From: Bispira polyomma
Lineage: Eukaryota
DNA length: 64,000 nt
Assembly: GCA_965649765.1 (NCBI GenBank)
Contig: OZ287752.1
Span: forward strand, 46,500,001 to 46,564,000
Direction of reading: 5' to 3'
Part shown: positions 2,788 to 10,300 of the stretch, piece after piece
Position numbering within the stretch: position 1 is the first letter of the stretch
How the letters are laid out: each line of letters begins with the position of its first letter
The notes under the pieces: generated by a model
Told to the model about the DNA's origin: nothing
Databases searched by the model: none
The model's input: only the letters and a program-made list of their open reading frames with translations
Program-made: the position numbers and the translations under genes

Positions 2788-3171
2788 CTAGGACCTGTTG
2801 AGGTATGTGGGGGCCTGGTTCTTTAAGTGGTTGAGGTAGCGTGCTGCATGCTCCAGGAAGATATAGTCTCTGTGGAGCTGGGACTGCCTGGTATCTATGT
2901 CACTGGCGGCAGTAACTACCTCGTCACCCACCCTCTCCTGTCTCTGGAAACTGGTCCACAACCCCTTGTTGTGGATCACCCCAGCCACTTCACACAGAAG
3001 GCTCTCGATGTTGTACACCTGGTCGGCATGACCTGCTACAATGTCTTGGAATTCTTCAAAGTAGGACTGGTCACCTTTACCAAAGTTGTTATATTCGTCA
3101 TTTTGTGAAAGTTCCAAAAAATACACAAACTTCACCAATCCATGATAGGTTTCGAAAATAAGTTCTTCTTC
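2788..3171 (-). CDS. Exon 4 (last) of putative IL-6/Unpaired-like four-helix cytokine (helices B-D)
   Basis: Acceptor gttttgtag|GAA, phase 0. Encodes EEELIFETYHGLVKFVYFLELSQNDE...IESLLCEVAGVI...QLHRDYIFLEHAARYLNHLKNQAPTYLNRS*. It extends track ORF 2788..3138, and its GC is higher than the flanks. Confidence 0.85.
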   Translation of the reverse strand, partial: EEELIFETYHGLVKFVYFLELSQNDEYNNFGKGDQSYFEEFQDIVAGHADQVYNIESLLCEVAGVIHNKGLWTSFQRQERVGDEVVTAASDIDTRQSQLHRDYIFLEHAARYLNHLKNQAPTYLNRS

Positions 3172-3860
3172 CTACAAAACAATAAATGGTTCCTTGAGGT
3201 ACTGAGGAAACATAACTGTTAATTGATAGCTTTATTGACTTAATTATGTATATTGTCATTGCCCGAAAAAGTGCTTTTGTAAAAGGTTTTCATGTATAAA
3301 CCCCAGATTCTAGACAGCAGGTTTGTAGACTTTTTGACTCTACACTATATTGGACTGAGGATTTGGTAGGACTTTTTCTGATAGTCTATTTTTTACATGA
3401 GGCCATATTACTTCCAGTTGGGAGCCAGGTATGGCCAAGTTACATTATTTAAAACAATTTCTTTCCAGCAGTGTACTTTTTCTGTACAGCACCCTCTTTG
3501 CAGGTACATTAACTTTCATATATGCTACCACATCGATACAAGTAAATTATAATTATTCAAACATTATAACAATAGTCCAACAGGGCAGACATCTAGCTTA
3601 CTTAAGTGGTTTTTGTACTGTGGATATCATATAAGTTAGTATTTTACGTTTACTACCATTTGTCAAGAAACCTTTGTCTCGGAATGAGTGTTCGAAAATA
3701 CTAAATTCCAACTGCAGTTTTTTTCCTTCATGAATGGTGATACTGATTAAGGCGGCACTTTTGAGTATAATTTTTATTACTTAAATTTTTAATAATACTA
3801 ATGTGTATTAATATTGGAAATAATTACATAAATAAATTATCTCAGCTAAAAAGTAACTAC

Positions 3861-3950
3861 CTTTTCATAGGATTTCATCGCTGGTAGTTGTTCAAACTTG
3901 ATGCTTTCTAACCAGTGTCTGTCTCCATGACTAATTCTGCCACTGGTATG
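3861..3950 (-). CDS. Exon 3 of putative cytokine (A-B loop)
   Basis: ctgtttttag|CAT...AAG|gtagtt, 90 nt, phase 0/0, open frame HTSGRISHGDRHWLESIKFEQLPAMKSYEK. Confidence 0.8.
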
Positions 3951-6114
3951 CTAAAAACAGCAAATAAAATCAAATATAGAATTGATGTGGAGATGTTTTG
4001 CTGACTAAAATACTAAATCTGTGATCAGGTGACTTATGTGAGGTGGTCTTTGCATGCTCAAGAGCCGTTTACTCCCAATCTCAAGAACGTCTGTGAACTG
4101 GAGTAAACGTCTAACATTGGGTCTGAGCTAGACATAAACTGAAAAAATTCTGAAAATGTTTAAAACTTCTGTGGGTGGTCGGCTCTAAAAAGACATCTTA
4201 AAAGAACTGGAGAAAAGGGGTGTGATCGGGGCATAAACACGGCTCAAACTGCTCAAAACTTGTGTGATCTGGACAGGACTGGTGTAATTTGAGATAATCT
4301 GGAGCAAACGTTGCAATGATGTGTGATAAACTGCTTAGATCTGGTCTGGGCATAAACTGGTGAGATCGGGTAAAAAAACTGGGCAGATCCTGGGCTTAAA
4401 CGGGTCATATTCTAGAAATGATCTGGTGAATGATGTGCAAATATGCACTTTCGCCCATTCTCTCACAATTACTCAAGTTCTAATGATCGAAAGTGAACGG
4501 GTATAAACGTGGCTGAGAAAGTGATAGTGTGATCGCCACCTAAGGAAGATGGTTATAAATATTTCAGGCTATTTGTGGTGGAGTCCAATATGGTGTCAAT
4601 CTGATCAGTGTTATTGCAGAGCTTAAACTGGCTCAGTCTGCTATTAAACATAGCACTTACTTATAAACCCTCTTCTCATAGATATTGCTTTTGTGAAGTC
4701 ATCTTGCCTTTTTGTTATTTCTATAAGTAGTCATCACCCGACCGTTACAAACAGCTTAGAGACTTGTGTCTGACAGAAATATTTATAAATGGGATTAAAG
4801 GCAATTGGAGAATTCTGTTAGGCCACTGAGTGTGAACCACAGGGCAACAAACACATAATTTTCCAATAGAGAACATGGATCTTAACCACTGTCAAAATAA
4901 CTTATTATCTCGTGGCAAGCACTAAGACGGAAATGACATGACACGGGCCATGCTTTAATACAATACAAGAGGCTTGGTGATGGCGTGACTTTAAACCATT
5001 TCAACAGTTTGGTAATCAAATCAAATCGCCTTTAGCTAGTGGTATTTACCTTTGTCATTAGATGTATGAGGGATGAGTGGGAAGGGTCTAATTTTCAGAT
5101 TATGGTGTCAATTTCAGTCAATTGACTGTTCCATGTAATTCAATGCTTGTGTTGTTAAGTAGTGGTTAATACCACAGACAAGTGTTTAACTCTATTTATA
5201 CAAGTCAAACGCATACTTAGTTTATAGCATTGACTTGATCTGTTTAGATAGTGATACACACTCCTTTGTAACAATCTGGTGATTTCATAACCACAGTACT
5301 TTCTTGAGGGGGAAGTTTTACATTTGAAAGTCAACAGTTAAAAGACATTCTTGTGGTTCTTTGTCTAATGGATCACTGTCAACACATGCTGATACACGAC
5401 ACGGCTATGTAAGCCGGAAATCATTTCTCTGTCAGATCCCTTTCTATTTCCGCACACATGTTCCCATTTAATTACATCATCCTAAAATCTCTTATCTCGC
5501 TAAAATAGTCACTTTATTACCTTTAAATAACTTACTTTGTCATCAAGGAATTATGAACACTTTTAATAAATCCTTAAACCTGTTTACCATAGTTTTACAA
5601 TTTTTGGAATTTCACAATCGCCAATAAGTATGCTGTGAAAGCAATCTTCTATCAGTTTTATTTTAGCGTCCGGATTCTACCCAACAGCAGGCTCACATAT
5701 TTGTACAGCGAACTGGTCACGTGTTTTTATAGAAATAAACACGGAACAGTTTAAGCAGACACGCACATTAAACATTCTGAGAATGCCAGGACGGAAAACC
5801 CAACCTGCCGGAACTACTTGAACCTGGTTTATTTATGTTTCTTTATGTTAATGTCAACTAATGCGTTAACACGACTACTGGTTACAGCACTAAAGAGTGG
5901 TTGTGTTGTGTGTGCCACTATTTGGTGGCTCTGTTTTTTTGTTGTTTTTTTACCGCTGGTACATTACCTTATACACTCCCATACTTGGATATAATCTGTA
6001 CATCACCTTATACACTCCTATAGTCCCTGTATTTCACCCAGCACTCAGATACTTATAGATAATCTCTGTATATTATGTGACACACTCAGATACTTAGATA
6101 TAGTTTGTATATAT

Positions 6115-6897
6115 ATCGAATCTGGGGAAATTGGCCTCCCCCAATTTTGTGGGGGTGGAAAATGGCCTTCCTGAAGGTTTTTTTTAATAATATTGGAGTA
6201 AGGTGTAATTTAAATTTTATAGAAGATGAACAGTATTTTTTAATTGATTGTACAGTTGATCATAGAGATAGAAAAGTGTTCTTTGATTAGGTTGTTAACA
6301 ATGTGGAAGTAAATATAAAAATAGTAAATTAATATTTTGAGTTCAGAGAAAAAATTTATAAATTTAATGTCACTCAAAGACCAACATATTAAACATTTGC
6401 AACATTTTGGTGTAAATCATAGGAGTATAGGAAATCAAATTTTTAAAGAATTGAAGATATAGAAAGTTTAAGAGTAACCATGGACTTGTAGGAGAGATTT
6501 AGAAATGTGTGCACAGTCAGAGCTACAGGCGAAACAAGTATACAAGAATTTCTACGAGGTATCGGACATTATTTGAGGCTAAATTAAGATGACAAGGTTA
6601 TAACATGTATTATATTGCTTTATATGCTATGTTAACTGATTTATATCTTTGTGTAATAAACTTGACCAGATATTAGGTTATTTAATTATTATGTGATTAA
6701 TGTGTTGTCAATGTAATAAATGTGTTTTGCTTTTTCTCTAGTGTTTAGTCTATTGCAGTTTTCTATTAAAGAAAACTTTAGGGAGGATAATTTTCCACAC
6801 CCACAAATTTGGGGAAGGCCAGTTATCCAGGAGGCTAATTTTCTAGGAGGCCAATTTTCTACGGGGCCAATTTTCGAGGCCAATTTTCTGTACACCA
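6115..6897. mobile_element. Non-autonomous Mutator-like (MULE) foldback element in cytokine intron 2
   Basis: ~45-bp inverted repeats (6124-6171 vs 6782-6828) and tandem GGCCAATTTT subterminal motifs. Internal remnant TGETSIQEFLRGIGHYLRLN* resembles a MULE transposase C-terminus. Confidence 0.5.
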
Positions 6898-7004
6898 TAT
6901 ATACAGCACACAATTCGCTGACATACTTTTATGTAATCTGTACATCACTTTACACACTTAAAAGTATTACAAGTTACATTTGGATTCACCGAACGCATAC
7001 TCAC

Positions 7005-7189
7005 ATAGTCATCCTGTAGTTGCTCTATTTTCTTTCTGATTATGTCACATAGGTCAGTAATTTGTCTTAGTGTGACCTCGTGTGACCTGTCATGTCGTCT
7101 GGTAGGGCATATATCGTAGAGATTTCTAACAGCGCGCCCTTCACACGTGTGTAAGAGCATTGCAAGCATCAAAACCAGGAACAGTTCTC
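7005..7189 (-). CDS. Exon 2 of putative cytokine (signal peptide and helix A)
   Basis: ttgtgttttag|GA...TAT|gtgagt, 185 nt, phase 1/0. Encodes (G)ELFLVLMLAMLLHTCEG-RAVRNLYDICPTRRHDRSHEVTLRQITDLCDIIRKKIEQLQDDY, a hydrophobic signal core followed by an amphipathic helix. Confidence 0.85.
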
Positions 7190-7671
7190 CTAAAACACAA
7201 GTGCTGAGGTGTACTGACTCATTCTGAACAGATTGATAAATGCTAAACTCTCACTTACCGACTTTTTAAATAGAAGGTTGCACAATTGATTTCATCTAAC
7301 AACATCTATTAATAGAGACAAATTTCTAAAGGGGTGGTTAAAAGATTGACAGAAAATGAAAATATCACTTGACAGACAATTGATTTCACAACTAATTTCA
7401 TTGAAAGTTTTCCCATACGTACGTGTCTACAACTGATCTTAGTTCTAAAGTTTTTTATGAAGTGGGACAAATAGATACTACGTTTTTCTGTGTGTAGTTT
7501 ATTTACCTAACTGTATTGACAGGGGATGCACTTTTTGACGTGGATACACGATTTGACTGCCAAAATATGTACCCCTTAATCTTCCTACAGTGCAAATCAT
7601 CTTTGAATTAGATCAATAGTGAGGTGGTAAAATTCTGCCGATGTAATTAGTTGTTTAATGTAGAGCCTTAC

Positions 7672-7687
7672 CTTTGTGATTTGACAT
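7672..7687 (-). CDS. Exon 1 coding part of putative cytokine (MSNHK-G)
   Basis: ATG TCA AAT CAC AAA G|gtaagg. The phase-1 donor fits the exon 2 acceptor. A TATA-like element lies ~40 nt upstream, and there is an alternative in-frame ATG at 7708. Confidence 0.7.
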
Positions 7688-7724
7688 AATCCTTTGTGTG
7701 TAAGACATCACACCACTAACAATT

Positions 7725-8004
7725 AATATATAGGGCATCCCTTTCACCACTATCCTAGAGCAATGTGTCAAGTGTAAAGTTTGCTCTGGCTTTCCCACAC
7801 TTTTATGCAGGCTGATGTGATGATTCAAGTATCCAAAAAAAGAGAAGTGGGGGATTCCCCGTGTTTGGTTTAACCCCCCCCCCCCCCCTTCATATGAGAT
7901 GTTGAAAGGATCTGTTGTACCATTCGTCTATTCCCGGTTTTCACACGATCCCACACAGTCATTTCAGCCAATCAGATCTTACAACTTATACGCAGGGAAA
8001 TTCA
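7725..8004 (-). promoter_or_regulatory. Proximal promoter of cytokine-like gene: TATA box and NF-kappaB-like sites
   Basis: TATATATT (- strand) at 7725-7732. Perfect kappaB GGGGATTCCC at 7850-7859. KappaB-like GGGAAAGCCA (- strand) at 7787-7796 and GGGAAATTCA at 7995-8004. CCAAT at ~7968. Confidence 0.55.
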
Positions 8005-8608: not shown

Positions 8609-10300
8609 GGGCTGTTCTACTATCAAGTCTATAATCAGGAGGGTCCCTGATTTTATGATCCTGGCCAATCCTTGGCATTTCCCCACGATTTTTGAAAAAA
8701 GACGAGTAAATTTGCATATAAAGATTGAAAAGATAAGTCTGGAGGGCCCTAAGGATAAGTATTTGGAAGGAAAAGATTAGTCTGGAGGGCCCTAAGGATA
8801 AGTCTTTGGAAGGAAAAGATTAGTCTGGAGGGCCCTAAGGATAAGTCTTTGGAAGGAAAAGATTAGTCTGGAGGACCCTAAGGATAAGTCTTTGGAAGGA
8901 AAAGATAGGTCTGTTAAACCCACAACGATCTCATAAAGATAAGTCGTCTAGCCTTTCTATTTAAAGTGAAATTTTAATTTTTGTCAGTTTTTGGAAGAGA
9001 TAAGTAGTTGAAAGGAAAAAAATAAGTCTTTTAAACAAAAGATAAGTTGTTGGAAGGAAAAGATAACTCTTAACTTAAAGAGATAAGTCATTACAAGGAA
9101 AATATAACCCTGAAGGGGGTCCGACTGAGCGGCTGTTACACAGTCACTCAGAGGTTATCTAACATGTTTGAAAACCTCTGCGACCTCCCCAATTTGAAAA
9201 TATAAGTCTTTTCAACAAGAGATAAGTCGATAGTGAGGCAAATCGTCCATGATAATGGCCCCCAAACTTATAATCGTTTAGGTCGGGTGTATGATCGGCA
9301 TAGTGGAACAGAGGTATAAAATTTAGAAATATGTTAAAATGTGTGGAGCCTCTTTTAGACAATCTACTCCCTCTATATCCAATATGGATGATTTCGGTCA
9401 TATCTATTTTCCCACCCCCTTTAGCGAGGTTGGCTTTTACAGTTACATCTACGTTTATTTTTTTCACATAAAATTTGCAGTTATAAACAGTAGGATCATA
9501 CTATGTCATTATTGGAACCCATCTTTTCAAACTCGCCTTTCCCTCTTACTTCCCTCCTTGTACACATTATGTACACATTTCTTCTTGTTTTCGGACTTCT
9601 CTTTTGGGTAACTGATTTTGTTGTTGTGTTTTATGCCCCAGTCACGCACTGCAGGTGTTGTAGGTGGTTGGAAAAGGTTATAGAAGTTAACGTACCTTCA
9701 ATTACCTTCCCATCTCTAGTGGATGCTGACTACAACTTTGTGTGGGTGAATGTCAGCACAAGGTCAAAACAGATAAGTGATAAGACGATAGGATGTATAC
9801 ACTTTAGAGGATACACACATTGACCTTTAAGTTTAAAATAGGAATGTATACATGTCAAGTAATAAGATCTCACTAATAAGATGTATAGGCCTTAGAGGAT
9901 ACTGGAAATCTACCGGATAGGACTTGAAGCTTAACCGTGTCTATAACTGCTTGTAATTGCTTCTCGCATCTATCACTGTGCCATTAAATATTCCACCAAC
10001 GGGAATAGAGGGTTAAAAGTAGACACAGACGGTTATAACTATGGTTAATCTGTGGGTAATCCCTGGGAATCCACCGTATTGGAGCACCTCCAACAGCATT
10101 TGACTGCCTCAGACTGAAGCTGAACCGCGTCTAAAACCACCTGTAACCACTTCTCACCATCTATCACTGTGCTATATCGCCATCACATGTTCAACCAACA
10201 ATAATAGAGGGTTAAAATCGATCAGAGCTGTTAATATATATGGGTGATACAGTCTGAGGGGTCAATCAACAGAGAAAGGTGGTTGATTTTGAACTGTCCC
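8609..10300 (+). mobile_element. Deleted PIF/Harbinger element
   Basis: Remnant SITFPSLVDADYNFVWVNV at ~9700-9755 matches the Harbinger DDE motif SIVLLALVDADYKFLWVDVG. Subterminal repeats are GATAAG-rich, like those at 63855-64000. Imperfect termini GGGCTGTTC.../...GAACTGTCCC; boundaries approximate. Confidence 0.5.
8728..8912 (+). repeat. 43-bp tandem repeat x4 (subterminal repeat of the Harbinger element)
   Basis: Unit AAAAGAT(A/T)AGTCTGGAGGGCCCTAAGGATAAGTCTTTGGAAGG starts at 8728, 8771, 8814, 8857 and 8900 (partial). No spacers. Confidence 0.9.

Follow-up and report, generated by a model that had tools for sequence, protein, structure and literature searches.

The window analysed here is a 64,000-nucleotide (nt) stretch of Bispira polyomma DNA (contig OZ287752.1; C5:46,500,001-46,564,000 in the 1.035-Gb, 75-contig genome that was searched), and its minus strand contains a four-exon gene that probably encodes a secreted helical cytokine. 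The four exons (7672-7687, 7005-7189, 3861-3950 and 2788-3171) had been proposed in a first-pass annotation made from the letters of the window. A coordinate check confirmed that each is bounded by GT donors and AG acceptors, and a frame check from the ATG of that annotation gave a joined frame of 224 amino acids (aa) whose sole stop is the terminal one. With that start, the exons measure 16, 185, 90 and 384 nt, and the intron phases are 1, 0, 0.

Gene structure, translation start and regulatory motifs

An orthologous locus (L003) was found on the 2.4-Mb ENA contig ctg31437l of another species. Exons 2, 3 and 4 are collinear there at exactly 185, 90 and 384 nt, with shared splice positions, a shared TAG stop and no indels relative to the window, and introns 1 and 2 are similar in length (482 and 3054 nt in the window, 479 and 3245 nt in the orthologue). 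Gap-free aa identity was 31/61 in exon 2, 20/30 in exon 3 and 82/127 in exon 4, where third codon positions carry 63 of the 110 nucleotide differences. The proportions of synonymous (pS) and nonsynonymous (pN) differences were 0.72 and 0.22, and the resulting dN/dS of about 0.11 indicates purifying selection on the coding exons. That the gene is real and conserved is virtually certain on these comparisons. A chance or pseudogenised exon arrangement from which no protein is made is extremely improbable, as the frame, splice sites and exon lengths have been kept at this low dN/dS even though synonymous sites are nearly saturated.

The start codon had to be revised. The ATGs at 7708 and 7687 are in frame in the window species only, and the orthologue carries no ATG at the position matching 7687, the start chosen at first pass. 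In contrast, the window has a further in-frame ATG, at 7738, to which the ATG at L003 5564 aligns without a gap, and comparison of exon 1 with L003 5564-5630 gave 7 identical residues out of 22 without gaps (pN 0.33 versus pS 0.65). Because ATG 7738 is conserved and ATG 7687 is not, coding exon 1 most likely spans 7672-7738 on the minus strand (67 nt, 22 codons plus 1 nt), and the precursor is most likely about 241 aa long with a signal sequence of nearly 40 aa. The mature protein of 201 aa is unaffected, and the phase-1 intron still falls inside the signal sequence. With the conserved start lying 51 nt further upstream, the claimed likeness to the tiny first exon of IL-6 is weakened.

Relatives of the gene are few. 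Word-indexed and full HMMER protein searches yielded as sole homologs two exon fragments (P0001 and P0003), both from that one ENA contig; a sequence search among 1.84 billion representatives found no relative except the orthologue, and a scan of JGI metagenomes found no relative. P0002, a repeat-rich 1602-aa protein with no architecture in common, was rejected as a homolog. When the window's own genome was searched for paralogs with profiles built from exons 2 and 4, they pointed to four loci (L002, L004, L020 and L021), which were dismissed as chance matches, being weak and having internal stops or an unrelated exon. No tandem paralog was present within the window or 80 kb downstream.

Several motifs on the minus strand flank the coding exons. 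A palindromic NF-kappaB-type site at 7850-7860 lies about 120 nt upstream of the conserved ATG, and the orthologue has one at L003 5466-5475, about 100 nt upstream of its ATG; the background of such sites in the window is about 0.15 per kb. An inverted CCAAT box at 7968-7972 has its orthologue counterpart at L003 5405. The 3' untranslated region contains an AU-rich cluster (2476-2745) with 12 ATTTA motifs and 5 TTATTTAWW nonamers within the first 310 nt past the stop, a density equalled in < 0.1% of 400-nt windows; the orthologue cluster, with 13 ATTTA motifs and 4 nonamers, lies 750-990 nt past its stop. The kappaB, CCAAT and AU-rich elements (AREs) are conserved motif matches with a putative regulatory role. 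STAT and AP-1 motifs close to the promoter did not occupy corresponding positions in the two species and were discarded. A TATA-like CATAAAA at 7801-7807, where the orthologue is AT-rich at a similar place, may serve as a promoter element, and an ATTAAA near 2434-2439 is a candidate polyadenylation signal. Intron 2 holds a non-coding block of about 640 nt (4783-5421) that is 72-77% identical to L003 8129-8780. This block is conserved at the DNA level as strongly as the exons, differs by many indels that are not multiples of 3, matched no Rfam family, and is a candidate enhancer.

Predicted protein and evidence for a cytokine fold

The predicted parts of the protein follow the exons. Coding exon 1, which ends in a phase-1 donor, supplies the first part of the long signal sequence; exon 2 (7005-7189, phase-0 donor) encodes the signal core, the cleavage site, the mature N-terminus with a Cys, and helix A; exon 3 (3861-3950), in phase 0 at both ends, encodes a 30-aa A-B loop; and the coding part of exon 4 (2788-3171) encodes helix B, the B-C link, helix C, the C-D loop, helix D and the stop. 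The exon boundaries fall where helix A is predicted to end and helix B to begin. In both species the N-terminus is signal-like, with a hydrophobic core (KD11 3.2 and 2.3) followed by C-x-G, after which cleavage is predicted in exon 2. The mature N-terminus bearing the Cys is identical between species at 13 of 15 residues, as are 11 of the first 12 residues of exon 3. The A-B and C-D loops are long, the B-C link in exon 4 is short (13 residues), and a short helix lies within the C-D loop. The hydrophobic i, i+3/4, i+7 patterns of the amphipathic helices are kept in both species, and AlphaFold, at low confidence, predicted exon 4 as all-helical with helices at the expected B, C and D positions. 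Hydropathy and conserved periodicity thus agree with the signal peptide, four amphipathic segments and loop lengths described at first pass. Two mature Cys residues are conserved, one N-terminal and one in helix C, with none in the A-B loop exon and none after helix C, and the sole conserved Trp directly follows helix C. The mature protein is acidic (24 K/R versus 33 D/E), and the precursor of 241 aa (224 aa from the first-pass start), with its signal-like N-terminus, falls within the 150-280 aa range of class I long-chain helical cytokines. A dibasic RR, kept in both species, lies three residues past the conserved N-terminal Cys in exon 2 and is a possible processing site.

Comparison of ESM Atlas features gave the principal evidence in favour of a cytokine. 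For the window exon 4 it amounts to a lead only, all named matches being long-chain four-helix cytokine clusters (0.81-0.88). For the orthologue exon 4, every named match was again a four-helix cytokine family, the top three matches reached 0.92-0.93 with 206-213 of 256 features in common, and the best named cluster was cardiotrophin-2-like (0.92), followed by CNTF, IL-11, LIF/OSM, IL-6/G-CSF, IL-27 and IL-12. The clusters returned were chordate; Hormone_1 (GH/PRL) was among several of the top ones, and neither a class II family nor an Unpaired cluster appeared. The distribution of conserved residues was also examined. One pole of an up-up-down-down bundle brings together the B-C link, the end of helix A and the beginning of helix D, and in gp130 cytokines that pole is receptor site III (PMC7378365). 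Identity between the two species was 52/63 (83%) at the putative site-III pole versus 28/58 (48%) at the opposite pole (nominal Fisher p 1e-4; p 9e-4 without the tail), and the contrast vanishes under an up-down-up-down topology (p 0.83). Together with the helix layout, these observations indicate that the product is probably a secreted class I long-chain four-helix cytokine of the IL-6/LIF/CNTF type.

A number of results weigh against this assignment and the receptor type it implies. The Atlas recognition values (2147 and 2247) did not reach the mark of 2300 set by the tool, ten same-clan Atlas matches also arise for one third of shuffled proteins, and the two Atlas queries, at 64% identity, are not independent. 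Exon-by-exon scans matched no Pfam family for any exon of either species, PDB sequence searches returned chance matches only and no cytokine, and HMMER protein searches gave no cytokine match. The AlphaFold models of exon 4, by itself or together with the orthologue, had predicted local distance difference test scores (pLDDT) of 43 and 51 and do not include helix A, and Foldseek, VIA-align and Atlas shape searches with the low-confidence exon-4 model yielded generic bundles with no cytokine prominent. The pole test was post hoc, devised after the alignment and applied to two sequences, and is supportive only. Moreover, four receptor-domain hidden Markov models (HMMs) did not locate a gp130/Domeless receptor, in exon-wise searches that are weak.

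The generic bundles, the single orthologue without any further sequence homolog, and the conserved dibasic RR of exon 2 would all suit a lineage-specific secreted helical protein of some other fold (class II or interferon (IFN)-like, some unrelated bundle, or a prepro-peptide processed at RR) whose cytokine likeness is a language-model artefact. We regard such a protein as unlikely, given that two sequences fell in the same Atlas clan, one of them above 0.9, that the exon boundaries separate the predicted helix A from the A-B loop and the loop from the predicted helix B, that the pole pattern is compatible with the up-up-down-down topology only, and that the gene starts with phase 1 while IFN genes have intron phases 0-0-0-0 (bioRxiv 10.64898/2026.05.30.728932). 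Likewise, in contrast to the all-phase-0 introns and five helices of type I IFN and other class II genes, which provide the criterion for class II helical cytokines (PMC4929537), the first intron here is in phase 1. Like the present protein, the oyster CgIFNLP (PMC9756803) has been put forward as a helical cytokine of a lophotrochozoan and has low sequence identity to its vertebrate counterparts, but it is class II or IFN-like, whereas the intron phases and Atlas neighbours here are of the class I type.

Relationship to known families and proposed function

As in vertebrate IL-6, IL-11 and G-CSF, one intron interrupts the signal region and two further introns, both in phase 0, bracket the A-B loop; the IL-6 intron phases match that pattern. 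A size of 150-280 aa, a signal peptide, a kappaB promoter and AREs are further points in common, as is a predicted long-chain helix layout with a short C-D loop helix (for IL-6, PMC7378365). In contrast to the five exons and four introns of IL-6 (PMC13081863), both species here have four coding exons, which bears out the earlier remark that IL-6's fourth intron is missing. The two conserved mature Cys do not form the IL-6 four-Cys pattern; IL-6 has four conserved Cys, with two in hagfish and some fish (PMC13081863). A Trp is absent from the start of helix D, where IL-6 has the hot spot Trp157 (PMC7378365), and TOMM7, whose adjacency is an IL-6 criterion (PMC13081863), is not adjacent here: the Tom7 match lies on C12 and the cytokine-candidate gene on C5. 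The IL-6 family PF00489 gave no match exon by exon. Given the four exons, the lack of a four-Cys pattern and TOMM7 elsewhere, IL-6 orthology is not supported, and neither is the specific kinship to IL-6 claimed at first pass. The lamprey and hagfish IL-6 candidates are comparable in that BLAST does not reveal them and they were identified through their size, signal peptide, fold and gene structure (PMC13081863), and the window protein has the length and signal sequence by which lamprey IL-6 was found (PMC13081863). Their fold, IL-6 synteny and STAT5 activation have been shown, whereas the present gene is known from sequence.

The group of LIF, OSM, cardiotrophin, CNTF and fish M17 supplied the top named Atlas cluster. 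In LIF and OSM, one terminal exon encodes helices B-D, and a Cys near the N-terminus can form a pair with one in helix C; here too, the predicted helices B-D occupy the last exon and the conserved Cys are N-terminal and in helix C. The gene differs from this group in having an extra intron ahead of helix B, and in that the FxxK site-III motif is not conserved at the start of helix D, the window protein having no FxxK and the orthologue one non-conserved match in its tail. The families PF01291 and PF01110 gave no match. The layout appears to join introns of the IL-6 kind to a last exon and Cys pair that resemble those of LIF/OSM.

The insect Unpaired proteins (Upd1-3 and Aedes Upd-like), to which the first-pass annotation had also likened the gene, are invertebrate secreted helical ligands and offer a functional model, since Unpaired is a Domeless-JAK-STAT ligand induced by infection (bioRxiv 10.1101/2025.09.21.677592). 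The present protein differs from them in its acidic mature part and in the absence of an Unpaired cluster from its Atlas matches, and the Unpaired family PF15972 gave no match at the locus at E values up to 10 in an exon-wise search of limited sensitivity, so that specific kinship to Unpaired is not supported. What stands of that annotation is the broader assignment to long-chain four-helix cytokines, through the Atlas features, helix layout, two Cys and kappaB/ARE motifs, without specific kinship to IL-6 or Unpaired.

In the model proposed here, the gene would respond to infection or injury through NF-kappaB and give a short-lived mRNA, and the secreted 201-aa class I cytokine would fold as an up-up-down-down bundle with one disulfide from the N-terminal Cys to the helix-C Cys. 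It would bind a gp130/Domeless-type receptor mainly via the site-III-like pole, formed by the start of the A-B loop, the B-C link and the end of the C-D loop, and receptor engagement would activate a JAK and a STAT encoded in the same genome. The first coding exon of a JAK-type kinase was found on C2 at 67.28 Mb (L022:1408-1812, plus strand), with FERM_F1 above the curated cut-off, and STAT DNA-binding exons lie on C13. The receptor HMMs PF09240, PF25552 and PF17971 gave no match in the genome in exon-wise searches. Two PF06328 matches proved spurious on inspection, and without them the seeming linkage of JAK and a receptor on C2 had to be given up. As a whole, this sequence-based model of an NF-kappaB-induced, secreted class I cytokine acting through a gp130/Domeless-type receptor on JAK/STAT is fairly likely to be correct, and the narrower reading, an inflammatory gp130/Domeless-JAK-STAT ligand, seems about equally plausible.

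A class I helical growth, metabolic or developmental hormone (of the GH/prolactin, leptin or EPO/CRLF3-ligand type), or a ligand of some other receptor, would look similar in several respects, since the fold and intron phases are common to the whole cytokine family and therefore cannot tell its members apart. The occurrence of Hormone_1 in several top Atlas clusters and the failure of the weak exon-wise searches to locate a gp130/Dome receptor are in line with such a hormone. It is nevertheless improbable, because inducible cytokines typically have dense AREs and a kappaB site of the kind conserved here, the C-terminal disulfide of GH/PRL is missing, with no Cys past helix C, and conservation is centred on the site-III pole, of which GH-type ligands make no use.

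An inflammatory ligand of this kind would be relevant to a gap in invertebrate immunity. Molluscs have IL6R-like receptors, JAK and STAT according to a 2026 survey, yet no invertebrate IL-6-type ligands were known besides insect Upd and a shrimp lectin (PMC13203501, May 2026). JAK-STAT components have been noted in earthworm coelomic fluid, and many annelid and bivalve cytokines are still undiscovered (PMC9756803). Our literature search, whose coverage excluded most subscription papers, found no annelid class I cytokine. The gene is a candidate for the JAK-STAT-activating signal still unidentified in worms and molluscs, and, since it is conserved and its mature protein is defined, the question of the annelid ligand becomes directly testable. 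We tentatively consider it, at somewhat less than even chance, a lophotrochozoan descendant of a bilaterian ancestor of IL-6/LIF and Unpaired, with an intermediate structure (phases 1, 0, 0), an inflammatory relay from NF-kappaB through the cytokine to JAK/STAT, and membership of a multi-member invertebrate class I family that includes the missing annelid and mollusc gp130/Domeless ligands. If this is true, IL-6/LIF-type gene architecture and NF-kappaB/ARE control would date back to the bilaterian ancestor.

Genomic surroundings

The gene lies amid transposon remains, and no host gene could be recognised in the window or over the 80 kb downstream. As read by eye from translations of open reading frames, about 135 kb around it (window 9000-64000 and L008-L015) looks like a gene desert with remains of LINE/reverse transcriptase, DIRS-like and DNA-transposon elements. 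Some 1 kb upstream of the gene, window 8727-8913 carries a 43-bp tandem repeat (4.3 copies, 96% match) that was not seen upstream of the orthologue. About 28 kb downstream, a 124-codon open frame on the minus strand (L010:2395-2766) has an ATG followed by a signal-like hydrophobic start; it gave no Pfam match and may be a chance frame or an exon of another secreted protein. The mitochondrial genome was recovered as a contig of 15,503 bp (C75, covered by L006 and L007), with gene names read by eye from translations. It contains trnS1(tct) and the block atp6-trnR-trnH-nad5-trnF-nad4L-nad4, which we take to be annelid-like and in keeping with a source that is most likely an annelid. Its genes lie on both strands, the minus strand carrying a cluster of seven tRNAs as well as cox1, cox2, cox3 and nad3, an arrangement that is, to our knowledge, unusual for annelids.

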